Translations under genes and position numbers: made by a program
Shown: piece after piece, positions 2,264-62,000 of the stretch
Layout of the letters: each line of letters starts with the position of its first letter
Position numbering within the stretch: the stretch's first letter is position 1
From: Octopus vulgaris
Taxonomy: Eukaryota
Assembly: GCA_951406725.2 (NCBI GenBank)
Contig: OX597814.1
Coordinates: 169,218,001-169,280,000 of the forward strand
DNA: 62,000 bases
Reading direction: 5' to 3'
Notes under the pieces: generated by a model
What the model was told of the DNA's origin: nothing
The model's input: only the letters and a program-made list of their open reading frames with translations
Databases searched by the model: none

Positions 2264-2345
<82 letters not shown>

Positions 2346-2559
2346 TATCTAGCTTTACATAGAACTAAGCCCTAATGATTTGAGGATCTGGGGGGAAAAC
2401 TTTCCCTGAGGAACAGAGAAAATATTAATTCATTGAACAATAATGCTTGTATAATAGGACCTGTGTAGGAAACCTCTCCCTACAAGTGAATAGCTAATGT
2501 TTGCAAAAATTTTCTTTCCAGATATCAAAAGCTGTCCCTCAGCTATTCATATATTCTTA

Positions 2560-4010
2560 TTGTGCAGTCCATAATCCTAGAGCTGTTGCAGTCAATGTGG
2601 ATACGATAGAAGATAAGTTTGGTGAGTTGTTGAAATGCAAGAATGGAGGTTTGAGGATGTGTGCTGCATGCAAGAGGCAAGCTGGAGGTGAGCCTCAGCC
2701 ATATTTCCTATGGGCTAATGACAAAGGAATAGATTCTTCTGTGTATGCAATAATGCTGATATGAGGTGGTGTGGGCATACTGTTGGCAGAGAAGTGGGTA
2801 CATAAAATGATCAAGGCATTTAGAAAATGTGATACAGTAATTCATCTTTGGCTAGTCTTGGACAACACAATAATGACATTTTTCTCTATATATGCTCCTC
2901 AACTGAGATTAGCAGATGTAGAAAAGAACCTATTTTATGAAGTCTTTTTGCAGATTACATTGATGATGAATGATAATCCCTTCTCTTCATGGTTGTTGTC
3001 TTTAATGGACATGTTGAGCAGTACTATGATAGATTTTATGGCATAGAAATGAGGAGTGAACAAAGCTGTTGGATGTATGTGATGTAAATGGCCTGATGAT
3101 CCACATCACTAACTTCAGGAAACTAGCCAACCACTTGATCATTTACCAGATTGACTACATTTTTTTTTAATGTAAAGTCCTCTGGGAAAAATGTATAACT
3201 CAAGTTAGTGACTTCAGAATTAAAGCTAAAAAGATTTTGAAAAATAAAGCAGTCTCTAAAAGGAAAATATGGATACTTAGAGATTCATTGAAGAGTCAAA
3301 AATGTAGAGAAGTACTAGTTGAAGCATAGGATGCAATGGAAGAGATCAAGACACACAAAATAGGATACGATTGGAGGTTCTTTCAGGCCAACATACTGAG
3401 AGCTATAAACTAAATCTGTGGCTAGTGTAATGTTCCAGCAAGACCAATGGGGACATAGTGGTGGAACAGTGAGAGAGTCATAAAAGCAAAGAGACAGGCT
3501 TGAACAAAAACTAGATGACATATTTAATAATGGGAGAAGCAGAAAGTAAGAGTTTTACCATCATGAGGTTCTACAGCATGAGGAACAGGTTTTCCAGATT
3601 GCAAGGCAATGTATCAGATGAAAATTTTTTTCTACTATAGGCACAAGGCCAGAAATTTTGCAGGAGGGGCTGGTCAATTACATTGACACAAGTGTTCAAC
3701 TGGTACTTATTTTATCGACTCTGAAAGGATGAAAGGCAAAGTCAACCTTGGCAGAATTTGAACTCAGAATGTAAAGACTGACAAAATGCCTCTAAGCATT
3801 CTGTTTGGCATGCTGACAACTCTGCCAGTTCACCACCTTTGCATCAGAGAAAATTGAGACATTGTGGGAGAGAAGTGTGTATGGATTGATAATGACACAC
3901 CTGCACTTAGTGGTTCTGAAAAGAGAGAGGCAAAGAAGTGCTCCTATGAAAGGTTATAAAATATGGAAAATGCATGGTAGGAAGAGTGTTTATCCAACAA
4001 TGGCCACCAT
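2560..4010 (+). mobile_element. Decayed RTE LINE: apurinic endonuclease and linker region
   Basis: ORF 2771-3046 GILLAEKWV...SIYAPQ...EKNLFY resembles an RTE endonuclease. Downstream fragments (WWNSE near 3435, VGEKCV...YERL near 3860-3960) are collinear with RTE ORF2. A SINE interrupts it at 3630-3839. Confidence 0.65.
3630..3839 (-). mobile_element. SINE family B copy
   Basis: Shares GAACTCAGAA / AAAGGATGAAAGGCAAAGTCAACC / ACTGGTACTTAT blocks with copies at 4030-4258, 18800-19028, 30745-30975, 46885-47375 and 55453-55628. Confidence 0.75.
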
Positions 4011-4029
4011 CCATTCTAATAGACAGCAA

Positions 4030-4258
4030 TATTATTTCTTTATTGCCCACAAGGGGCTACACATAGAGGGGACAAACAAGGACAGACAAACGGATTAAGT
4101 TGATTATATCAACCCCAGTGCATAACTGGTACTTATCTAAATGACCCAGAAAAGAATGAAAGGTAAAGTCAACCTTGGCAAAATATGAACTCGGAATGTA
4201 GTGGCAGACAAAATACTGCTAAGCATTCTGCCCGGCGTGCTAATGTTTCTACCAGCTC
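4030..4258 (-). mobile_element. SINE family B copy
   Basis: Near full-length match to other family B copies, from TATTTCTTTATTGCCCACAAGGGG to CCAGCTC. Confidence 0.8.
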
Positions 4259-4906
4259 ATGATAGATAAAACGATTATGGATATGCTTCTTTTATATGTA
4301 CTTATCTGACCATACTAGTATGGAAAAATGAGTATAAAATTAACACACTCAGTAGAAATGTATATCCATGAAGGTAAATCAAGTAACCGATGACATGCTG
4401 TTTGATGTACTTATGATATTCAAAACACCAACAATCAGCTTGATCTACATTAATCTATTCTAATAAGTGCATCTGAATTATTCCCCTTAGTTTATTTTGC
4501 TTAATACTCTCAGACCTGCCCCCCTGTGTCTAATTTTACTCTTTGTCTGGACTCCTGAGCAAAAACATAAATAGTTGCATATACTGCTAAAGAGTGATGA
4601 TTGCAGGTAAACTAATGGACAGAATCAAAAAAAAAAATTTAGACGAATAACAAAAATAGGCCTTTCTCTCAACAACTGTATTTGTTAGGCAAACTAATGG
4701 ACAAAATCATAAAAAAAATTCAGGAAAATAACAGTAATAGGGATTTCTCTCAACTACTGTATTTGTTTACCTGAATCACTACTTTCATCATCCCTTTCAC
4801 CTGTCTGATTGTCTGAATCACTCTCATTGCTAGTGTGAGTGTAAAATCTTTATCTGAAGAATAAATATCATCAATAATTTTCTCAGTTGCAAAGAGTTTC
4901 TTTTAC

Positions 4907-5122
4907 TCTTTAAACTTGTTTCAGTCATTTGACTCCGGCCATGCTGGAGAACCGCCTTTAGTCAAGCAAATCGACCCCAGGACTTATTCTTTGTAAGCCT
5001 AGAACTTATTCTATTGGTCTCTTTTTGCCAAACCACTATGTTATGGGGACATAAACACACCAGCATCGGTTGTCAAGCGATGTTTGGCAGAACAAACACA
5101 GACACACAAACACACACACACA

Positions 5123-5158
<36 letters not shown>

Positions 5159-5305
5159 GCTTCTTTCAGTTTCTGTCTACCAAATCCACTCACAAGGCTT
5201 TGGTCGGCCCGAGGCTATAGTAGAAGACACTTGCCACGCAGTGGGACTGAACCTGGAACCATGTGGTTGGTAAGCAAGATACTTACCACACAGCCACTCC
5301 TGCAT
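4907..5305 (-). mobile_element. SINE family A copy (tRNA-like head, internal microsatellite, GTAAAAGA tail)
   Basis: Reverse complement of the AGGAGTGGCTGTGTGGTAAG...GGTTCAGTCCC head (A/B-box-like) and the conserved 3' body. More than 15 whole or partial copies occur in the window. Confidence 0.85.
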
Positions 5306-6179
5306 CAAGACTACACCTTGCTCGTTTATAAGATGAAGTGCTGGGTTCATAACATGCTGGTTTAATTGCAATTTTTTTTTTCTTTTTTGATTAAAAACAA
5401 CAGTAGCAGCAGCTATGGGATCACAATTAACAATAAATCATAAACAAATTTGGGTGCAAAGCTGCAATATGTGATCGGTTATCTAATTTTGATATTTTAT
5501 CTTCTTTATTTTTTTATGTATATTATTCATTACTGCTTTAGTGGGAATGTGATAGAGATGACATTTAAGCTATTTCTGCTATATCAAGAACATAGTATGA
5601 CAGGGTTAAAATTATTCTTGGTCTATGTTTAGGTCTCCCATCAGTTTGCTTGGCTTGAAGAATCCATCTTGCAATATGTTCCTGCAACATTCTAATTACA
5701 TGTTTGTAGTACAAGAGGTATGACTTCTCATTGCAGAGAAATAGCAGCTTGACCTGGAGAACCTCTCTGTCTCCTAGCTATGCTCCCTGTTGAGTAACAT
5801 TACTCCAGAGATCATTCTGAACCCCATTTGAGCTGTTTGTATATGTGAGTATACTTTTTGGTCATTACACAGCATTCACAACCTTGGTGAGGAAAGGCTT
5901 GAAAACTGAACTGAAGATACCAAGTTTGGCCTTTTTTTACCAACCTCCTTTTTTCAGAGAATCAATCACTGGAACTAGTGCACTACTTTGCTGGCATCTG
6001 CAATTAAAAAATCAAAACTAGTATAGTAGATTTGATCTAAGGTGTGGTTTTAGGGATACCTGGCCGTTATTTCTGATAAATATCCTTCAATTTATATCTT
6101 ACTGCTTCAGAAAAGGAAGAATGCATTGGTAAATCTAATCTCGTCCTATGGATATGCAAAAAAAAAAGAAAAAAAGGGA

Positions 6180-6896
6180 TTGGCGCAAGAGTGGCTGTGT
6201 GGTAAGTAGCTTGCTTACGAACCACATGGTTCCAGGTTCAGTCCCACTGTGTGGCATCTTGGGCAAGTGTCTTCTACTATAGCCTTGGGCTGACCAAAGC
6301 CTTGTGAGTGGATTTGGTAGACGGAAACTGAAAGAAGCCCATCGTAGTCCAACCCATGCTAGCATGGAAAACGGACGCTAAACGATGATGATGATGATGA
6401 TGATATAACGGGAAAGTTTACGAAAATAAACAAAAGACGAAGGCAGGTGGAGTACAAACAAACAAATGTATTAGTATAGCGCTCAGGAATAGAAATAGAA
6501 AAAGTCTTTTACATTTCAAGCCTACGCTCTTCGACAGAAAGATACACAGAAAAATACAAGGAGAGAAACAAGGAGAGAAAAAAAATGCGTGTAGGAGCTA
6601 ACGATCTATCATGGCGTCCTGACTTCGGACAGTGGTCAGACGCGAGAGGGACAGTAGGGGAGATAACAGGGTCAAGTGACTTCCAATATACCCCCCCCCC
6701 CCCGCCCCAAAAAAACATTGCTTGACAATCGATGCTGGTGTGCTTATGTCCCCATAACTTAGTGGTTCAGCAAAAGAGACTGATAGAATAAGTACTAGGC
6801 TTACAAAGAATAAGTCCTGGGGTTGATTTGCTCGACTAAAGGCGGTGCTCCAGCATGGCCACAGTCACATGACTGAAACAAGTAAAAGAGTAAGAG
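6180..6896 (+). mobile_element. SINE family A copy with inserts in its internal microsatellite
   Basis: Head at 6180-6345, family C tail plus (GAT)n at 6345-6404, Penelope-like insert at 6405-6690, then the 3' body at 6715-6896. Confidence 0.8.
6505..6542 (-). ncRNA. Variant hammerhead-like motif (degenerate) in a Penelope-like pseudo-LTR fragment
   Basis: Minus strand: tcttt CTGTCGA a GAGC gtag GCTT GAAATGTA aaaga. Stem I is tcttt/aaaga and stem II is GAGC/GCTT; A6 is replaced by U. Confidence 0.5.
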
Positions 6897-10206: not shown

Positions 10207-10795
10207 ATAGGCGTAGGAGTGGCTGTGTGGTAAGTAGCTTGTTTACGAACCACATGGGTCCAGGTTCAGTCCCACTGCGTGGCACCTTGGGCAAGTGTCT
10301 TCTACTATAGCCTCGGGCCGACCAAAGCCTTGTAAGTGGATTTGGTAGACGGAAACTGAAAGAAGCCCATCGTATATATAACGGGAAGCTTTATGAAAAT
10401 AAACAAAAGACGAAGGCAGGTGGAATACAAACGAACAATTGTATTTGTATGGCGCTCAGGAATATAAATAAAACAAGTCTTTTACGTTTCGAGCCTATGC
10501 TCTTTAACAGAAAGATACACAGAAAAGAAACACAGAAAGAAACAAGGAGAGAAAAAAATGCGTGCAGAGGCTAGCGATGTTTGTGTGTCTGTGTTCCCCC
10601 CTCCCCAACATCACTTGACAACTGATGCTGGTGTGTTTACGTCCCCGTAACTTAGCGGTTCGGCAAAAGAGACCGATAGAATAAGTACTAGGCTTACAAA
10701 GAATAAGTCCTGGGGTCGATTTGCTCGACTAAAGGCGATGCTCCACTCCAGCGTGACCACAGTCAAATTAACTGAAACAAGTAAAAGATATAAAA
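10207..10795 (+). mobile_element. SINE family A copy with Penelope-like insert at 10378-10578
   Basis: Head GGCGTAGGAGTGGCTGTGTGG, then an insert in the (TA)n homologous to 6405-6600, then the 3' body. Confidence 0.85.
10478..10515 (-). ncRNA. Variant hammerhead-like motif, second copy
   Basis: Minus strand: tcttt CTGTTAA a GAGC atag GCTC GAAACGTA aaaga. GAAAC and the ACGT palindrome are intact; G8 is mutated. Confidence 0.5.
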
Positions 10796-12719: not shown

Positions 12720-12735
12720 AGAGAGAGAGATATAG

Positions 12736-12774
<39 letters not shown>

Positions 12775-12840
12775 CCGACAGATAGAAGAGATAGATAGAT
12801 AGATAGATAGACCGACAGATAGATAGATAGAGAGATAGAG

Positions 12841-12883
<43 letters not shown>

Positions 12884-12924
12884 CCGACAGATAGATAGAT
12901 AGATAGATAGACCGACAGATAGAG

Positions 12925-13020
<96 letters not shown>
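12720..13020. repeat. (GATA)n microsatellite
   Basis: Read directly from the sequence. Confidence 0.95.
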
Positions 13021-14186
13021 TGATTGAGTGTGTGTGTGAGCCACAGTACTAATAATGTCTGGGGGTGGGGGAATGGCCAGGAGAGTCACTATCCTGTATT
13101 TTAAAAATATCGAATTATAGAAAACAAAATTCTACGTTATAAGTGAAAAGGATTAGATCGTGCGCGCACGTGTATATGTATGTTTTTTCTGTGTGCATAT
13201 GTATGTGTGTGGAGTTTGCCTGTGTGTATGTATATGTGTTTATTACAGTGAGTTATCTAATACACACGTATCAATGAAAAACAGCCTTCAACATTCCACG
13301 AGTTTTGTATTGTTAGTACTATATATAAATAATAAGACATAACGCATTCGTGTGCGTATTATTAATCCGCGCATGAATAGAAACACTCTTCAGCATTTAT
13401 TGAATTTCGTGTTATTATAATGATTACATTAACACAAATAATAGCACATGAATGAAATCAGTGAGTTGTGTTATTATTATGATTGTATTATTGGCTATAA
13501 TAATACAGTATTATTGTAGTCGGTACTATATTCGTAATAATAAAACAAGTCATTCTTGTGCATGTTAATACTACACACAAAAATAAAAAATTGCCTCCTA
13601 TAATCAGTGAGTCAACGCAAGTCATCACTATTAAAATGATAATAATCGCAAAGGGAATTGCCGTTCATCGTTTATCTAGATAATTCTTGTTTTGGAAATG
13701 TACCGTAATAAATCCGGATTTGGATGGGAAGAAAGAAAAGAAAAAAATTATGAAAGTATTTAGTGATCAGAGTTCATGTAAAGGACAACAGTGTAAAGTA
13801 CTATATGTATTGCTGAATTCAGGCTAAGTTATTCCATGCATATTTACTAGTGTTGATAAAATTAACCGTCATAGATTTTTACAATGACAGAAGGCATCTC
13901 TCAACCAGATGCCATTAACGAAGAGACAGTATATAAGCCAATTAAGCCAGTATATAAATAAGATAATAATATAAGCCAATTAAGTTTAGTCTGTTGCGAC
14001 AGATCATATGGCATTATCGGAATATTAGAAAGCGGGGTACATATTACCACTAAGGTTAATGGAGCTATAGAATAGGGAACACAAATGTTTCCAAAGGATC
14101 TTGTTTTGGGGCTTGTGTCTTTAATGCAACAAACTTGAAAATGGTGAAAAACTCTTGCTTAACTGGTTAGTATGGAGCAAATATAG

Positions 14187-18799: not shown

Positions 18800-19028
18800 C
18801 TTATTTCTTTACTGCCCACAAGGGGCTACACACAGAGGAAACAAACAAGGACAAACAAACGGATTAAGTCGATTATATTGACCCCAATGCGTAACTGGTA
18901 CTTATTTAATCGACCCCGAAAGGATGAAAGGCAAAGTCAACCTCGGCGAAATTTGAACTCAGAACGTAGCGGCAGATGAAATACCGCTAAGCATTTCGCC
19001 CAGCGTGCTAATGTTTCTGCCAGCTTCC
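18800..19028 (-). mobile_element. SINE family B copy
   Basis: Full-length, high similarity to 46977-47208. Confidence 0.85.
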
Positions 19029-30713: not shown

Positions 30714-30744
<31 letters not shown>

Positions 30745-30981
30745 CTATTTCTTTACTACCCACAAGGGGCTAAACATAGAGAGAACAAACAAGGACAGAC
30801 AAATGGATTAAGTCGATTATATCGACCCCAGTGCATAACTGGTACTTAATTTATCGACCCCGAAAGGATGAAAGGCAAAGTTAACCTCGGCGGAATTTGA
30901 ACTCAGAATGTAACGGCAGACGAAATAGGCTACACATTTCACCTGGCGTGCTAACGGTTCTGCCAGCTTGCTACCTATTAC

Positions 30982-46884: not shown

Positions 46885-47375
46885 TATTTCTTTACTACCC
46901 ACAAGGGGCTAAACACAGAAGGGATAAACAAAGACAGACAAATGGATTAAGTTGATTATATCGACCCCAGTGTATAGGGTGGCGAGCTGGCAGAAACGTT
47001 AGCGCACTGGGTGAAATGCTTAGCGGTATTTCGTCTGTCGTTACCTTCTGAGTTCAAATTCCGCCGAGGTCAACTTTGCCTTTCATCCTTTCGGGGTCGA
47101 TAAATAAAGTACCAGTTTCGCACTGGGGTCGATGTAATTGACTTAATCCCTTTGTCTGTCCTTGTTTGTCCCCTCTATGTTTAGCCCCTTGTGGGTAGTA
47201 AAGAAATATATATCGACCCCAGTGTGTAACTGGTACTTATTTGATCGACCCCGAAAGTATGGAAGGCAAACCTCAACCTCGGCGGAACTTGAACTCAGAA
47301 TGTAGCGGCAGACGAAATACTGCTGAATATTTCGCCCGGCATGCTAACGTTTCTGCTAGCTCACCGCCCTTATGG
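46885..47375. mobile_element. SINE family B(+) nested inside SINE family B(-)
   Basis: The insert at 46974-47208 is flanked by a 17-bp TSD TATATCGACCCCAGTGT (46957, 47209). Confidence 0.9.
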
Positions 47376-52467: not shown

Positions 52468-54378
52468 GTGTGTGTATATATATATATATATATACATATA
52501 TACATATTCCGTGATTGTTACCTACATCACCTCACTGGCACTTGTGCTGGTGGCACGTGAAAAAACATTCAAATGAGGTCGTTGCCAGTGCCGCTGGACT
52601 GGCTCCTGTGCAGGTGGCACATAAAAAGCACTATTTGACCGTGGCCACTGCCAGTACTGCCTGACTGGCCCTCATGCCGTGCCGGTGGCACGTAAAAGCA
52701 CCCACTACACTCTCGGAGTGGTTGGTGTTAGGAAGGGCATCCAGCCGTAGGAACTCTGCCAGATCAGATTGGAGTCTAGTGCAGCCATCTGGTTTGCCAG
52801 GCTTCAGTCAAATCATCCAACCCATGCTAGTATGGAAAACAGACGTTAAACAATGATGATGATATATATATATATATATATATATATAGGCGAGTTAAAT
52901 TAGAGGTTATAAAAACCGTCTAAGGGATACTTGTATCCAATGAATTAACTGGTGTTTTACCTAAAGGTTTTCAGAGGGATAGCATGTAACATATTGGAAT
53001 ATCCTTACTTTTTTTCTTTCTTTTTCTTTACTTTTCTGCTCTGATGAACTTCCACTATTTAAGTTGGCTTAATTAATTATTTACAATAATAATAATTATT
53101 ATTATTGTAGTAATTAGGCCTGATTATGCCCTAAATAGCCTCAACAAAAACAGCTGTTAGATGAGATAATGTGTCTTTTTTATAATCAATAAATAATAAT
53201 TGATGTTTGTCAATTATCAATTTTATCTCCACTTTCTTATTTTCCTTATGTGTGTGTATGTGTGTGTATTACTTATTTAGGACTAAATCAGCAAATGTGG
53301 ATAATTTGAAGGAATTTAGGTACTAGTTCTTGCAGATCAGGTGATCATATAAAAGCTTTTCCATTGGCTTCTATGAATTACACCCACCATTTTAAAAAGG
53401 TAGGAAGGACATCTTGGATATTGTCGTGCCAGTAGATACACTGTATTTGAAATTAAAAAGATTGGAAAATTATACCTGAAAAATCTTTAATCATTGGACA
53501 ATATAATGATAGATGGAAAGTCTTTTACCATTCTTTCATACTGTGTTCAGTGCCTGCAAGGAGTCTTTACACTGTTATTTGATATTCAAGAAATAACTAC
53601 CAAATCTCTCTTCAACCAGAAAGCTGAAGTTGTATCTTATTGGCACACTGGTTTTCTCCCCATTTTCTTAGTGCCGTTGTAGTAACCAACTGCAAAGGCA
53701 GCATGACTTCCAGTGTCTGAACACTGGATTAGGAAATTATAAACTGCCTCAAGAAAGCCATGTGTAACCTTTGGAAGACACACAAAAATTTTTTTCAAGT
53801 AACTATTTCTCCCTCCATTCCAAGATCCTTGTCTATCAGACAAGTCTATGCTTCTATTTCTTTGTATTGGTGCAAAACACGAATCATACTCTACAGCTGG
53901 ATGCCCTTCATAATACTAGTGCTATACAGTGTGTACTAGGTGCTGTTTTTCATGCCTCTGGCACTAGCATGGTGAACAAGTAACTTGCAAGAGAGGAAGA
54001 GAACAAAGGAAAAGAAAAGCCCACTTTACAAAGTGATTGACTATTTGAGAAAGGGGAGGTAGCTTTATGCAAAGTATTGGGAGGTAAAAGTATGAGAGAT
54101 GGACGAGCATGCATATCTTACTCTAGAGGAGATGCGTGACGACTCCACATTATATAAAGGTGGGTAAGAGGAGCTGTGAAGAAGTAATGATGGGGTGCTG
54201 GAAAAAAAAAAAAAACTTTAAGGAGCAAGGAAAGTGAAGCTTCTTGAAGTATAACTTTCAGTCGCACATTACTGATTATTCAAATGATTGAATAAATTAA
54301 ATGGTATTTTGAAATTAAGAAACTCAAGAGCTATAATTCAAGAAGGTTCAGCTTATACATGTGTGTGCACACACGTGT

Positions 54379-54418
<40 letters not shown>

Positions 54419-54755
54419 TCATGCGTGTGTGTATGTGCGTTCATGTGTGTGTGTGTATGTAAATACACACACACGTACAGACAGACAGATACACACACAC
54501 TGATATATATATATATATATATATATGTAATCTTTTATCACAGCATATTCCATAATGGATTCACAGCATCATGCATAATGAACAGCATAATTAATCACCA
54601 CTGCTGCTGTTCTTGCTTATGTTCAATATATTGATCTTCCCTAGTGGTTTGCTATTATTCCTGGTGAACAAACTTACGAACTATCTATCTACCTTGTGTG
54701 CATGTCTCTCTGTTTGTTGGTTTACCTGCCTCTCTGTATGTCTGTCCATTCATCC

Positions 54756-54845
<90 letters not shown>

Positions 54846-54857
54846 TTATCTATCTAC

Positions 54858-54914
<57 letters not shown>

Positions 54915-54916
54915 CA

Positions 54917-54947
<31 letters not shown>

Positions 54948-55098
54948 CTGGACAGACAGACGCAAGTCAAATGGGCTCCAAGTAAGTTGGTCATTTTGTA
55001 CGTTCAAAAGTGTTTATTGTTAAATATTTTGTGTTTAAAAGTTGTGCAACAACATCCACTGCAAACCTTGACTAATATCTACACAAAATTTCGCAAAA

Positions 55099-57126
55099 AT
55101 GGCTACTGGTCACCACGAGGCTGAGGCGCAACTGAAGCGTGACGCCAAAACAAAAAAGCAAGATTTCCTGTCACCATGCGCTGAACTTGACTGTGTAAAC
55201 ACTACTTACTCCAACACCACCACCATCAGCATCGACAACAGCAACAAATACAAAACAAAGGTCGTAAGACCAAGCACCGTCACCGCCACCAGTGATTCCA
55301 CCATCAACACCAACACCACCACCATGGCAGCATCTGCTACTACAACTGCTATCTCTGCTAACGACACCACTACCAGCAACAATAACAATACCAACATCAC
55401 CATCACCGCCACCAAAGACCGTGCCGTCAATGCCTCCCTTGCTACTAATACCTATTTCTTTATTACCCACAAGGGGCTAAACATAGAGGGGACAAGCAAG
55501 GACAGGCATAGGTATTAAGTCGATTACATCGACCCCAGTGCATAACTGGTACTTAATTTATCGACCCCGAAAGGATGAAAGGCAAAGTCAACCTCGGCGG
55601 AATTTGAACTCACAACGTAACGACAGACCTAATACCACCGCCGTCACCAAGAACGACAATAACAACAACAACAATTCCCTTCAGCCACTGTTCACTCCAT
55701 CACCAACAAGTGAAGGTGAGAAAAAAATAACAGCGACAATCAAACGAGGTGCCGAAATTTGCGCTAATGCAGGACCAAATTACGCAGACAATTTTCCACC
55801 CCTTGCCAGTTGCATAATCAGCAACCACAAACCTAATATACCCACAACCCACACCCCTGCCACCAACACCAACACCACCGGCAGTAACAACAATAACAAA
55901 ACAACAACAAACTTCGCCGAGGCGATAAAAGAAAAAATAACAAGAGTACCGTTTACTGCACAGCAAATAAAAGACTGCAGAGCCCTAATCACCAAAGAAA
56001 ACGGCAAAATACAATTACACATACCACAACACATACTGAATGAGGAAAAAAAGAGAACAATTGTATATAAAATAACAAACAACACAACTAAAAGTCCAGA
56101 AAAAGCAAGCACGGACAAAATAGAAAAGTGCCTACGCCCCATCTGGGGACACAAGGAGTATGTGACTTGGTCGAACAAGTTCGCCCACGTACAGGTGGTT
56201 TTTTCAGAATGAAGAGTTGGCAAAGCAATTCCCAACGCTAACTCTTCATTCAGATGAGCTAACAATGACACCCAGTTACCTTGGCCAGAAGGTGACAAAG
56301 GTCATTATCAATAATGTCCCGCAAATAACAACCACACTATGGATAACATCCGCCATAACATCCGAAATGGAGGACATTAACATCCTGGATATCACTGTTT
56401 CGAAACACAAGGACTGGGTGGGAAAGAGAATGGAGATTCTCTTCCACATAAGCCAAGACGACATTAACAAAATTCCCACCCACGTACATCTTGCGAATGA
56501 CCGCAAGTTGTATGTAGTAGTCGAGGGCAGAAGGCCACGCTGCTATACATGTGGCAGTGAGGCACACCTCAAAAAGGAGTGCAAATCTGCCGCGAAACAA
56601 CAACAACAACAGCCACAGGAAAAACCACAAAAGCCAGCATTATTGTCCACACCACAATATGGACGGCTAATCAAGAAGCTGTATGCAGAAATGCATGAAA
56701 AACAACAAAGAACGGACCAACCCAACCAAACAACACCACCACCTGCGCCAAGAACAGAATCATCACCACTAACAACAACTAAACCAATTCCAACACCGAG
56801 AACAACAACGAAGAAGACAAGCACCAAGGATGTAGGAGAGAAATCACCACACCAAACCCCCCAGCAACACACCCCACACCACAACAATATCTACAACCGC
56901 ACAAACAGACCCAGATGCTTTACCCTTACCCCCGGCTAATTCGTCAGGCTTTTCATCTAACGATGAAAGTTCGACAGAATGGCAAATAGCCACCGGGGGT
57001 AAAAGAAAAGATTAAAAAAAAAACAAACAAGAAAACGCAACCAAAGCAGGGAGATACCTGAACCCTGAAAGCTCCATACACAACCAAACAGGAACGAGGA
57101 AGCCAAAACTTTCGACACAAGTAAGT
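55099..57126 (+). pseudogene. Disrupted gag-like ORF1 of LINE copy 1
   Basis: ORFs 55099, 55538 and 56217 join up once the SINE and frameshifts are removed. It carries the zinc knuckle CYTCGSEAHLKKEC (C-X2-C-X4-H-X4-C). Confidence 0.8.
55453..55628 (-). mobile_element. 5'-truncated SINE family B inside ORF1
   Basis: 8-bp TSD CTAATACC at 55445 and 55629. Confidence 0.85.
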
Positions 57127-57173
57127 AACTCTCTGTACTTTCCTTTCTGTGTTTTAAAGCACACAATAGAATC

Positions 57174-58089
57174 ATGGTCAAGATTGGTTGTGTGAATGCG
57201 CGTGGCTTGGGGTCTCCTTGGAAACAAGGATACCTCCTAAATGACATGAAGTCACACGATTTGGGAATCAGCCATAAGTGAGACCAGACTCCACGAGCCA
57301 CGGGCCCTAAAGTCCATGTTTGGCGGACAGTTTAACATTTATTTTGCTCCCTGTCTGCCGAGGATGGGCGGTAGTGGCACCGCGGTACTTTTTCACTAGA
57401 GCCTGGATCTCGAAGTCAAGAAGATATTCGTAGACCCGGAGGGTAGACTGGTCGTTCTGGATGTCAACGGTAGCAGTGGGTGTGCTTTTCGACTCGTATC
57501 AGTCTACGCACCGCCTTTAACAGGTCGGCCGGATTTCTTTCAACGTCTAGAAGTATTCCTGGGAACGTCTCGTCCTTTACTTTTAGTGGGGGATTGGAAT
57601 GCTACCTTGGACACGCATCTAGACTATGTGGTGAGAGACAAAAACAGAAGGGGATGCAAATGCTTCAGAGACCTGCTCAGACAATTCCAACTGTCTGACA
57701 GGTACCGACTCGACCACCCAAATGCACCAACGTGGACATGGAGTAACCGCAGTGGGTCGTCGAGATCGTATCTAGATAGGATACTGTGTAGGACAGTAGA
57801 CAAGGATAACTTAGGATGTCCACAATTCCACACAGTCAGCTACACAGATCACAAATTCGTGACATGTACGCTAGACTTAGATAAGGCACATAGACAGGGT
57901 CCTGGTTACTGGAAACTGAACGTATCATTCCCGTCCAGACAAGATTTCAGAGACAGAATCAACACGTTTGTAAAAAGGGCTTTAACGGGAGCCATTGTCA
58001 ACAACAAATGGTGGTTCGCCCTCAAGAGAGCAGTAAAAGCGGAAGCAATTAGATATAGCAAGGCGCTAGCCGTAGATAGAAATAGAGTA
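57174..58089 (+). pseudogene. Frameshifted ORF2 apurinic endonuclease domain, copy 1
   Basis: MVKIGCVNARGL, SETR, LVSVYAP, VGDWNATLD, WTW...SYLDRIL, DHK and GPGYWKLN are L1/Tx1 APE motifs. Confidence 0.88.
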
Positions 58090-58614
58090 TCACTTGAAGA
58101 GGAAAGTGAGAGTAGAGAGGTAAGTTTTGTCTAGTGAATGTTTTAAAAAAAGATGGGTGAATGTAGCAAGGATGGCGCGTATGAATGACGAAGCCACCTT
58201 GACTATGATTCTATGAACCGTAAAAATTAATACAGAGAGTTGCTTATTTGCAAAAAAAAAAATAAAAGAAAGTAATATAACATGTGACTTCATTGACCGA
58301 GGTTACCGTGGTCTTTTCCGTAGGCTTTTCTTTCCACGGGTAAACCTCACCTGTCCTCCCCTTTGCACTTCATATTGACATTTCTGTGATAACGATCCCT
58401 ATTGATCAATTCCCCCCCTTTTTTTTTAAATTTTATTTTATCTCCCCCTTTTTTTGTCCTCTTTCTTTCCATTTACGATCTCTTTTGATCGAAAATCAAA
58501 CCCCCTTCTTTTACTCCCAAAAGAAAAGCTCTACCTTGTAATTTTGTTCTGTCTGTGTGCAGCCCTGTGTGGCTAATAAAGAAACATATCTATCTATCTA
58601 CATATGTATGTATG

Positions 58615-58665
<51 letters not shown>

Positions 58666-58677
58666 ATCTACCTATCT

Positions 58678-61600
58678 CGACATGGACGGACGCTAGTAAA
58701 ATCGGCTCCACGTAAGTTGGCCACTTTTACATGTTTAAAACTCCTTGTTGTCAAATATTTTGTTTTAATCGTTGTGCAAGTTAATTCACTAAAAAAACTG
58801 AGAATTATTCACGTAGAATTCCGCCCCTGTATGGGCGAAATTACCAAAAACTTTCAAAACTTTCGTGGGTTCCTTTTAGCCATTTTTCATTTTGAAAATG
58901 GCAACTAGAAACCACGTGGCTAGCCCGCCAGCCATGCGGAACGGTAGCGAAACACTATTGCTACCACTAGCTGCTAAACCTCGCAGCTTGAACACCGCTG
59001 TCACCACCACCAACCAACAACAACAACAAAACTAACGTCGCAAGACCATTCACCATCGCCGCGACCAAAGACATTAACTTAGATTTCCCCCCACTCCCTA
59101 CACTACTTGTCGATGATAAAAGGATGGAGAAAGGGATTTCAAAGACGAATACAGACGAAAACATGAATGCCAGCACCACCACCACACCACCAACAACAAC
59201 AACAACGAAATCAACACAAAGCCGCCTACCAAAGACAACACCGCCAACACCAACACCACTACCATGACTTCAACTGCTACAACTAACCCTTCTGCTGCTA
59301 ACACCGCTAAAATTAAAACGAATTTCGCGGATGCGACAAAATAAAAACGAACAATCGTAAAATTCACCACACAGGAAATAAACCTCACAAAAGCACTCTT
59401 CACCAAAGAAGGAGATAAATTGCATCTTCACATTCCACAGCACATCGTGGAAAACACACAAAAAATACAATAATCTACAAAGTAATAAACAAGAAAACAA
59501 GACGACCAGAAAATGCACCGCAGGAAAAAATTGAAAAATGCCTTCGTCCTGCATGGGACTCCAAGGAGTATATCAGTTGGGGAAATAAATTTGGTACAGT
59601 CCAAGTACGTTTCCTCAACGAAAATTTAGCAAAACGATTTTCCACATTGGAGCTGCATTCAGACGACTTGGTAATGATACCAATCTATTTAAACCAGAGA
59701 GTGACGAAAGTCCAAATAAAAAATGTACCCCCTGAAGTCGAAACACAATGGTTAGTCTCTGCCATCTGCTTTGAAATGGCAGAGACAAACATCCTTGAAA
59801 TCGCTGTTCTAGGACAGAAAGACTATGTGGGAAAATCAATCCAATTCCTTCTTCAATTGGATGAAACAGCAAGAGAAAAAATACCCACACTATAGAACTG
59901 CCAGGAGGCTACAAACTTTATGTAGTGGTAGAGGGCAGGCGACCACGTTGCTATTTGTGTGGAAGCGAAACACACTTGAAAAAGACGTGCCCAACCACTG
60001 CACACCAAGAGCAACAACAACAACCACTACCACAACCAAAACACTCCGGAAAAAAGCTCTACTACCCACACCACCATCAACACAGAAGACGACAAGAGAA
60101 GCACACCAAGCTAATCCGTCAACAACCAAAAATTACTCAACACCTGAGAAAATACCAACACCACCAACAACAGCAAGAACCAAAGGAACAGAAAAACAAA
60201 GAAAATACACAAAAACTGATTCCCCATCCCTTATACCGCACTCACCACACACAAACACTCAACAAACAACAGCACAACCACTTACACAGACATACATAGA
60301 AGCCTACAACATACCCCTACCCACTACTGATTCCTCAGAAAATTCGTCGGAAGACGAAACCAGTGAGGAATGGCAAATAGCTAGAAAAAGAAGGAAAATA
60401 AAGATCAGAAACACAACCAAACCAAATGCAAACACTAACAAAGCAGGGGGAAATACATCTCCCGAAGACATTTCAAAACCCAACACAAACAACAGCCACA
60501 CCAACACCACAAAAATATATACAGCAAACATGCTCACAGCTATAGACACCAAAAACACAAATTTGATGGAATACATCCAAAAAAAACAAACATAACAGAA
60601 GATGACATAAAAGCAAACAATCACCCATACACAACACCACCAGACCACATCAAAATATTACACATCTCCAAAAGTCTGCACCACACACTCAAAGGCATTT
60701 TCCCCAGTGCGGTTGGTAAATGCCAAAAATATCTCACAAAGAAACTGTACTGGGATCTCCTCGAGGACAAACCAAAGGAGGAGAAAGCAAAACCTTTCGA
60801 GCAGTAAGTAACCCTCTGTTCCTTTCACTTGTATTCTAATTCATTAGGATTATGATCAAGATTGGTTGTGTAAATGCGCGTGGCTTGGGGTCCCCTTGGA
60901 AACAAGGGTACCTCTTAAATGACATAAAGTCACATAAGTTAGAAATCATAGCCATAAGTGAGACCAGACTCCACAATCCACGGGCCCTAAAGACCATGTT
61001 TGGCGGACAGTTCAACATTTATTTTCCCCCTGTCTGCCGAGAATGGGCGGTAGTGGCACCGCGGTACTTTTTCGCAAGAGTCTGGATCTCAAAGTAAAGA
61101 CAATATTCATAGACAATATCCAGGACGACCAGTCTACCCTCCGGAGGGTAGACTGGATGTCGACAGCAGCAATGGGTGCATTTTCGACTCGTATCAGTCT
61201 ATGCACCGCCCTTAACAGGTCAGGCAGATTTCTTTCAACGTCTAGAAATATTCTTGGGAACATCTCGTCCTTTACTCTTAGTGGGGGATTGGAATGCTAC
61301 CTTGGACACGCATGTAGACTACGTGGGTAGAGATAGGAATAGACGGGGATGCAAATGCCTCAGAGACCTGCTCAGACGCTTTCAACTGTCTGACAGGTTC
61401 CGACTAGACCACCTGAATGCGCCAACGTGGACATGGAGCAACCGCATTGGGTCGTCGAGATTGTATCTAGATAGGATACTGTGTAGGACAGTAGATAGAG
61501 ATAGCATAGGATGTCCACAATTCCACATAGTCAGCTGCACGGATCACAAACTTGTGACATGTACGCTAGACTTAGATAAGACACTTAGGCAGGGTTCCGG

Positions 61601-62000
61601 ATACTGGAAACTAAACGCGTCTTTCCCATCGAGACAGGTTTTCAGAGACCGGATTAGCACACTAATAAAGAGGGCTTTGAGGGGAGCCATTGTCAACAAC
61701 AAATGGTGGTTTGCCCTCAAGAGAGCAGTAAACGCAGAAGCAATTAGGTACAGCAAAGCACTAGCCATAGATAGAAATAGAGTAGAGGGTGAGCTAGTTA
61801 AGAAGCTAGAAGAGGCAATTAGAAGCGGCATCACATTCGACGTTTTGGTGGCGAGGTTTGCCCTCGACCAACACTTCAACGCCAAACACGAAGGGTGTGC
61901 TGTCAGGGCTAGGATGCGTGCTCTAAGGAACGAAGGTGTTGGAGCCGCGAGAGAGGCCCGGGTGGCAGAGGCGCAACAGGGCAACAAAGCCACCATTCGG
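58678..62000 (+). mobile_element. Tx1/L1-clade LINE copy 2 (runs off the window end)
   Basis: The 5' UTR is homologous to copy 1. ORF1 starts at 58898 (MATRNH) and has CYLCGSETHLKKTC. ORF2 starts at 60852 (MIKIGCVNARGL) with APE motifs and frameshifts, and continues past the copy 1 deletion point. Confidence 0.9.

Follow-up and report, generated by a model that had tools for sequence, protein, structure and literature searches.

A 62,000-nucleotide stretch of the Octopus vulgaris genome (contig OX597814.1, positions 169,218,001-169,280,000; hereafter the window, with coordinates counted from its start) carries two long interspersed nuclear elements (LINEs), copy 1 and copy 2, that lie in the same orientation among (TATC)n repeats. 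We conclude, with a probability of roughly 85%, that LINEs of this L1/Tx1 type, of which we distinguish at least four families (F1 to F4), insert preferentially into (TATC)n/(GATA)n microsatellites, with TATC always on the sense strand. A first-pass annotation of the window had proposed such a family. It had also described copy 1 as lying between TATC repeats, copy 2 as following at once in the same orientation, and the pair as something other than a simple duplication. Each of these descriptions is borne out by the mapped features below, in which open reading frames are abbreviated as ORFs, untranslated regions as UTRs and short interspersed nuclear elements as SINEs.

54752..54947, plus strand: (TATC)n/(ATCT)n array directly 5' of copy 1 (TRF: period 4, 50 copies, 92% matches)
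54948..58586, plus strand: copy 1, F1 LINE, 5'-intact but defective, 3.6 kb versus ~6.1 kb at full length
55099..57051, plus strand: ORF1 remnant of copy 1 in three frames (frameshifts), 85-90% identical to the ORF1 of locus L010 (tblastn)
55453..55629, minus strand: 5'-truncated tRNA-headed SINE inside copy 1 ORF1, 84-92% identical to four other copies in the window
57165..58083, plus strand: N-terminus of copy 1 ORF2, an apurinic-type endonuclease (APE), residues 5-311 of 1143, 91-97% identical to the ORF2 of locus L037 (tblastn)
58082..58586, plus strand: C-terminal 44 codons of copy 1 ORF2 and 3' UTR, with terminal box AGCCCTGTGTGGCTAATAAAGAAAC, which includes AATAAA six nt before the end
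58587..58677, plus strand: (TATC)n array between the copies (TRF: period 4, 23 copies)
58678..62000, plus strand: copy 2, F2 LINE, 5'-intact, cut by the window end; its 5' end CGACATGGACGGACGCTAGT directly follows the second array
59291-60397, plus strand: ORF1 remnant of copy 2
From 60846, plus strand: ORF2 of copy 2, residues 6-385, 81% identical to F1

Copy 1 extends from 54948 (CTGGACAGACAGACGC...; 5' end CTGGACAGACAGACGCAAGTC) to 58586 (...GGCTAATAAAGAAACA; 3' end GCCCTGTGTGGCTAATAAAGAAACA), where TATC repeats follow without a gap. Both arrays are flush with it, and the second array serves both as its 3' array and as the 5' flank of copy 2. The first array is interrupted by TTTA, ACAT and CTCT, and degenerate repeats of the GTCT/CATC type lie ahead of it from ~54680. 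Within the window, the 12-mer TATCTATCTATC occurs 83 times versus 0.01 expected. The two copies share 80% identity in the 5' UTR, 65% in ORF1 and 84% in the endonuclease region by blastn, and 38-55% (ORF1) and 81% (ORF2 N-terminus) at the protein level. Because of this strong divergence, they represent different families rather than a duplication.

Arrays at both ends of intact and truncated copies

To characterize flanks beyond the window, 39 loci (L001 to L039) were picked by their F1 5' end from the same 2.8-Gb assembly, which has ~30 chromosome-size contigs. The flanks of F2, of F3 and of further 3' ends were read from the aligned range of junction-spanning queries, and genome-wide counts were taken from exact patterns. 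In 35 of the 39 F1 loci, a TATC array on the element's own strand, at least 8 bp long (median 83 bp), lies directly 5' of the element, and none of the 39 has the GATA strand there. About eight of these arrays belong as tails to another element located upstream; the others border on unique DNA, a different microsatellite or the tail of a SINE. With an F2 query made of 63 nt of array plus the 5' end, the alignment enters the array in 37 of 39 places, by at least 54 bp in 33 and by at least 26 bp in 4 more. For F3, 10 upstream TATC bases are covered in 39/39 places. Genome-wide, exact F1 5' 19-mers have at least three perfect ATCT units 0-3 nt upstream in 59 of 107 cases, and the background coverage by TATC is ~0.3% per strand (window positions 1-54000). 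The 5' joins occur in three phases: ATCT|GG (27), ATCT-CT|GG (21) and ATCT-ATC|GG (10).

At the 3' end, TATC comes next in 38 of 40 copies, always in the phase ...AAAC(A/T)|TATC, and an array of at least 29 bp follows the 3' end in 33 of 39 further copies. Exact sites in which the 3' end is joined to TATCTATC number 7,035 genome-wide. AATAAA lies 6 nt from the 3' end, and no poly(A) is present. The first-pass annotation had suggested a check of TATC phase and strand bias in the flanks of other copies; the phase at the 3' end is constant, and no sampled copy follows GATA. Kojima (2015) set a level of 20% of copies, to be clearly exceeded, for the presence of one repeat directly at either end, and the observed shares at the 5' side (35/39, 37/39 and 39/39) and the 3' side (38/40 and 33/39) are far above that value.

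Copies that lack their 5' region are particularly informative. Five truncated copies were resolvable in the fetched loci, and each of them lies immediately after an array in the same orientation (L010:196-323, whose array is bounded by unique DNA, L010:371-394, L031:7063, L035:6402 and L037:6631). The genome-wide pattern (TATC)3-N0-30-terminal 19-mer gives 410 matches at ~170 loci, whereas control patterns that join the terminal 19-mer to (GATA)3 or (TG)6 give 1 match each. The ~170 loci are micro-copies of 25-49 nt within TATC arrays (for example C1:3733497-3733540). Since truncated copies could not have brought 5' repeats along, TATC is a target and not just a 3' tail. The micro-copies are truncated at various points. 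One junction, ...TATCTATC|TGTGTGCAGCCC, recurs as a hot spot where the element itself contains TCTATCTG, as would be expected if 5' ends are joined to a TATC end through microhomology. At L007:322-365, a 43-nt mini-copy in an array has its first 22 nt joined to its last 21 nt, an extreme internal deletion.

Copies are also clustered. Among the first 100 3'-end sites, 10 neighbor pairs lie <1.5 kb apart versus ~0.5 expected (~20-fold), and 9 of these 10 close pairs are on the same strand. Different families share one array in the window and at L033, L035, L006 and L015. The two outer flanks carry the same compound microsatellite at L001 (TACC) and at L013, L031, L034 and L038 (GTCT). A search of the fetched loci for unique-sequence target-site duplications outside the arrays found none, only microsatellite matches.

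Three further observations concern the distribution of copies and arrays. In G000:C1 (0-27.6 Mb), 3' ends form long same-strand runs, for example 12 consecutive plus-strand ends at 1.6-2.4 Mb and 7 consecutive minus-strand ends at 19.1-19.6 Mb. Full-length copies cluster regionally, with 10 of the 40 best F3 5' ends on C22 (32.6-35.2 Mb) and five exact F1 5' ends grouped on C8 (17.7-19.9 Mb). Palindromic compound (TATC)n(TA)n(GATA)n or nearby GATA arrays are found downstream of elements at L012:5290-5500 and L018:6470-6560.

Two copies lie off target. L020 (G000:C3:149089181-149096581) is a full-length F4 copy in a non-array site rich in TATG/TATT, flanked by a target-site duplication of 12-15 bp, ATGTATTTATGT(A/G)TT, with junctions at locus positions 383-400 and 6470-6487. 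It has (TATC)4T between the duplication and its first base and no 3' array. L018 is the second off-target copy and sits in a TATA/TATG (TATN-rich) site. That both off-target sites are TATN-rich favors a nick-site preference.

Arrays without an element also exist, as the following feature of the window indicates.

12727..13022, minus strand: unoccupied (TATC)n array of ~300 bp, with TATC on the minus strand and an element fragment on neither side

Alternative readings and a proposed mechanism

Several points weigh against preferential insertion into arrays as we have described it. We infer insertion into a pre-existing array from the anatomy of occupied loci. The samples of 39-40 copies are the best-scoring candidates rather than random draws, and the fraction in arrays is no more than an estimate, about half by a strict exact-match pattern. 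GATA-type repeats mutate fast, and thus some array length may have been gained after insertion; the sampled copies are 3-7% diverged from their nearest neighbor. Five copies (L002, L014, L016, L018 and L020) have just 9-17 nt of 5' TATC before unique DNA. Furthermore, the (TATC)4T inside the L020 duplication means that the complementary DNA (cDNA) itself can bring about four 5' units, which suggests that the transcript carries short TATC ends. Part of the 5' TATC would then be element-borne, so short 5' runs such as those in the five copies are by themselves no proof of targeting. Finally, an abundant tRNA-headed SINE that ends in ...TTGTCCCCTCTATGTTTAGCCCCTTGTGGGTAATAAAGAAATA is homologous over ~45 nt to the LINE 3' end. 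Although it has the 3' box in common with the LINE, this SINE terminates in AAAGAAATA and lacks TATC. Its six copies in the window are outside TATC arrays, and TATC follows the end of none of them:

55453-55629, minus strand: SINE copy (the insertion in copy 1 ORF1)
30736-30927, minus strand: SINE copy
47025-47208, plus strand: SINE copy
46886-46902, minus strand: SINE copy
18802-18985, minus strand: SINE copy
4033-4216, minus strand: SINE copy

If the SINE is moved by the same proteins, the endonuclease alone cannot explain the specificity. The alternative that fares best, although we still judge it unlikely, is that targeting is real but is set mainly by pairing of the transcript's UAUC tail with nicked GATA DNA, and that the endonuclease is relaxed rather than GATA-specific. 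The SINE copies fit this alternative, as does a relative from Argonauta hians (L043; BAAFZT010000001.1:9779835-9797847), whose ORF2 is 56% identical. Its 3' ends, at 10291 and 10651, retain the 3' box GTGGCTAA(T/G)AAAGAAAT and are followed by AT-rich unique DNA with no TATC. However, the 3' junctions of L020 and L018 lack TATC and yet lie in TATN-rich sites, as a nick-site preference would produce, and it may be another relative, one without specificity, that mobilizes the SINE. Both models predict a strict choice of strand. We take the SINE to suggest a partnership with this LINE clade or with a non-specific relative, and the single A. hians locus may mean that TATC specificity is younger than the clade. 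That locus also holds a second, equally oriented copy ~100 bp further downstream, which is 5'-truncated.

It is considerably less probable that TATC is present at both RNA ends, that insertion has no sequence preference and that the long arrays grew later by slippage. L020, with its (TATC)4T inside the duplication and no 3' array, and the five copies with short 5' runs speak for this alternative, and human GATA repeats mutate at ~2-4e-3 per generation. Regardless, truncated copies devoid of the RNA 5' repeats still directly follow arrays, outer flanks have compound microsatellites in common, and unrelated families share arrays. Slippage likewise leaves the ~20-fold same-strand clustering and the TATN-rich character of both off-target sites without explanation.

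The first-pass annotation had itself named what would refute its proposal, namely that TATC is just a 3' tail made by the element and that the 5' flanks of other copies are random. On this reading, the tail would be made or carried by the element, as with the microsatellite tails of RTE, CR1 and I elements, and insertion sites would be random. The constant phase of the 3' junction and the AATAAA just upstream of it would suit a tail, and there are known cases of microsatellites seeded by the tails of LINEs (PMC2887409, PMC3812793). One part of this possibility holds, in that the constant 3' phase and L020 point to element-borne TATC in addition to TATC as a target. Random 5' flanks, in contrast, are contradicted by same-strand TATC 5' of 35/39, 37/39 and 39/39 copies in three families and by the ~170 micro-copies directly after TATC versus 1 per control repeat, and we regard a tail as the whole explanation as very improbable. 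Equally hard to credit is random insertion with preferential survival in microsatellites as safe havens, a reading favored by the reported passive accumulation of Drosophila Waldo-A/B near CA repeats, or tandem duplication by unequal crossing-over between arrays, because junctions fall exactly at the element's first and last bases in invariant orientation, the window copies are only 65-84% identical, and selection would scarcely remove micro-copies of 25-49 nt from other places.

Preferential insertion into TATC arrays could proceed as follows. The endonuclease would nick the GATA strand of an array, and the freed ...GATA-3' end would pair with UAUC repeats downstream of the terminal box of a transcript whose 3' end lies within the array after the element (...AATAAAGAAAC-A/U-UAUC...) and would prime reverse transcription. 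Priming on UAUC repeats would mean that no poly(A) is copied and that the 3' junction has a constant phase. The second strand would be cut ~12-15 bp away, and the resulting duplication would be invisible within the array. Joining of the 5' end would yield a full-length copy that brings along a few AUCU units from the transcript, or else a 5'-truncated copy, often via TATC microhomology. Each insertion would thus leave a TATC array on both sides, these arrays would attract more copies, and same-orientation tandems of unrelated copies, of which the pair in the window is an example, would be the outcome.

A more ambitious proposal, which we consider rather doubtful, is a self-reinforcing LINE/microsatellite system. 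Here, the transcript would start and end in a TATC array, the UAUC tail would guide integration, and each insertion would make two new arrays, so that the family would create the sites for its own later insertions. Use of the same 3' box by the most abundant octopus SINE would make the clade, or a close non-specific relative, the unrecognized driver of SINE expansion in octopus genomes.

Families, classification and further features

The at least four families have a common architecture and conserved end motifs. F1 includes copy 1 and F2 includes copy 2. F3 has the 5' end CGGACGTGCTGTCCGTTCGGCTCC (L033:3655), and F4 combines an F1-like 5' end with an ORF2 76% identical to that of F1 and the 3' end GGCYACAATAAAAAGT. 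Sampled full-length copies are 93-97% identical to their nearest neighbor, and full-length relatives measure ~6.1 kb. The 5' 147 nt of copy 1 share 97-100% identity with 40 other genomic copies and its 3' 287 nt share 89-97% identity with 39, and the 5' end of copy 2 together with its upstream array is matched at 39 other genomic places.

Both LINE copies in the window are defective. Aligned to the full-length reference L037, copy 1 covers positions 1-148, 220-2033, 2303-3307 and 5670-6162. An internal deletion at ~58083-58090 joins ORF2 residue ~311 to ~1100 (reference position 3307 to 5670) and has removed the reverse transcriptase. The endonuclease assignment for copy 1 comes from the intact homolog (Pfam Exo_endo_phos). 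The SINE inside ORF1 is flanked by a 7-bp duplication, TAATACC, at 55446-55452 and 55630-55636, and was inserted later than copy 1. Copy 2 is defective through several stops.

In Pfam searches, the intact ORF2 of L037 (1143 aa) contains Exo_endo_phos at 27-217 (4e-13), RVT_1 at 516-755 (1e-31) and zf-RVT at 977-1029 (5e-6). The best match to ORF2 in the PDB is human L1 ORF2p (8sxt; E=4e-55), which is collinear over residues 10-854, and R2 reaches just 3e-20, over the reverse transcriptase. By these similarity searches, the closest characterized relatives are L1-group ORF2 proteins rather than those of R2, RTE or CR1. ORF1 (~580 aa in L010) has one exact CX2CX4HX4C zinc knuckle, which is also present once in copy 1 (CYTCGSEAHLKKEC). 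Pfam matches it to zf-CCHC below the gathering score (E=0.0014-0.0033; 0.0014 for the copy 1 remnant). The Pfam search of ORF1 gave no Transposase_22, RRM or RBD_ZCCHC3 domain, and RRM and ZCCHC3-type domains were absent even at E<=10. A CCHC-type ORF1 has been reported as consistent with Tx1 (PMC5203782). In a repeat annotation of O. vulgaris, L1-Tx1 is the sole L1-group superfamily among recently active insertions, with 13 families and 421 insertions of ~5.4 kb each, and targets are not mentioned there (PMC13282606). The domain architecture, the L1-group best match and the putatively CCHC-type ORF1 indicate that the octopus elements probably belong to the Tx1 clade.

The hexamer GTAAGT, which resembles a splice donor, occurs at 54982-54987, 57121-57126, 58712-58717 and 60804-60809. 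Both families retain it, once in the 5' UTR and again ~45 nt ahead of the ORF2 start codon. Downstream of this second site come a pyrimidine tract and then an AG that immediately precedes the ATG. These sites may be splicing signals for ORF2 expression. Folding of the aligned 3' boxes gave no structure (one reference, L013, was wrong, and an AGCC/GGCT stem is too short). A search of the window against Rfam returned sub-threshold matches (mir-297, mir-466, SCARNA7 and others), all in a (TG)n/(TA)n tract at 54355-54577, and these were rejected as low-complexity artifacts.

Another SINE-like 3' end, the second of its kind (GGATTTGGTAGACGGAAACTGAAAGAAGCCC.TC), carries tails of the TA/TG/ATCC/ATCT type (window positions 5167, 6316, 10344, 48253 and others). 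At four loci (L009, L018, L022 and L035), a LINE-occupied TATC array begins right after such an end, and tails of this second SINE may seed target arrays. More distant relatives, at ~40-50% identity, form head-to-tail tandems (L041/L042 on ERZ25071366 ctg14421c and L045/L046 on ERZ21867824 ctg122906l). Their periods are 6484 and 6596 bp, the copies are not separated by a microsatellite, and these tandems are uninformative on TATC. At L045, a 38-bp spacer resembles the upstream flank and may reflect a different specific target. The tandem on the contig that is flagged as circular is possibly an assembly artifact.

Relation to known microsatellite-specific LINEs

Microsatellite-specific LINEs are few, and their targets so far comprise TC, TTC, TTCC/TTTC, AC, ACAY, TAA and TG. 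In the Tx1 clade, Kibi and Koshi of teleosts occupy (TC)n and (TTC)n, and crocodilian families are found in (TTCC)n/(TTTC)n (Kojima & Fujiwara 2004; Kojima 2015, PMC4494074). Other examples are Waldo (ACAY)n and Mino (AC)n of the R1 clade, Dong (TAA)n of the R4 clade and Togen (TG)n, which is NeSL-related. As first suspected, no earlier report of a GATA/TATC-specific LINE was found in the searchable literature (Repbase was outside its scope). We propose a new target specificity among microsatellite-specific L1/Tx1 LINEs.

Targeting of (GATA)n/(TATC)n by a clade of thousands of copies would extend the list of specificities, and to a new phylum, and would account for some of the abundance and orientation that GATA-type arrays show in the O. 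vulgaris genome. The 3' box shared with a major SINE bears on what drives octopus repeat expansion. With clear junctions, off-target cases and several diverged families, the system is suited to mapping the endonuclease and RNA determinants of target choice, and site-specific LINEs are under study as tools for safe-harbor gene insertion.

Like Kibi, Koshi and the crocodilian Tx1 families, the octopus elements are APE-type members of the L1 group that have one microsatellite on both sides, one orientation and several families per target. They differ from Kibi and Koshi in that the target is a tetranucleotide, TATC/GATA, that is not purely pyrimidine/purine, in that the host is an octopod mollusc, and in the repeat that we propose is also carried at both RNA ends. 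With Waldo, Mino, Dong and Togen, they share microsatellite specificity as non-LTR elements and a 3' repeat common to element and target. However, those elements belong to other clades, of which R4 and NeSL use a restriction-like endonuclease, whereas the octopus ORF2 is collinear with human L1 ORF2p. The ORF2p architecture, frequent 5' truncation, 5' junction microhomology and a 12-15 bp target-site duplication (in the off-target copy) are all as in human LINE-1, from which the octopus elements are set apart by the absence of poly(A), an ORF1 with a CCHC motif and no Transposase_22 match, and strong target and strand specificity. Finally, lepidopteran RTE elements (PMC2887409) likewise supply a 3' microsatellite and multiply arrays, but their 5' flanks are unrelated, whereas the 5' flank of the octopus elements is the same repeat.

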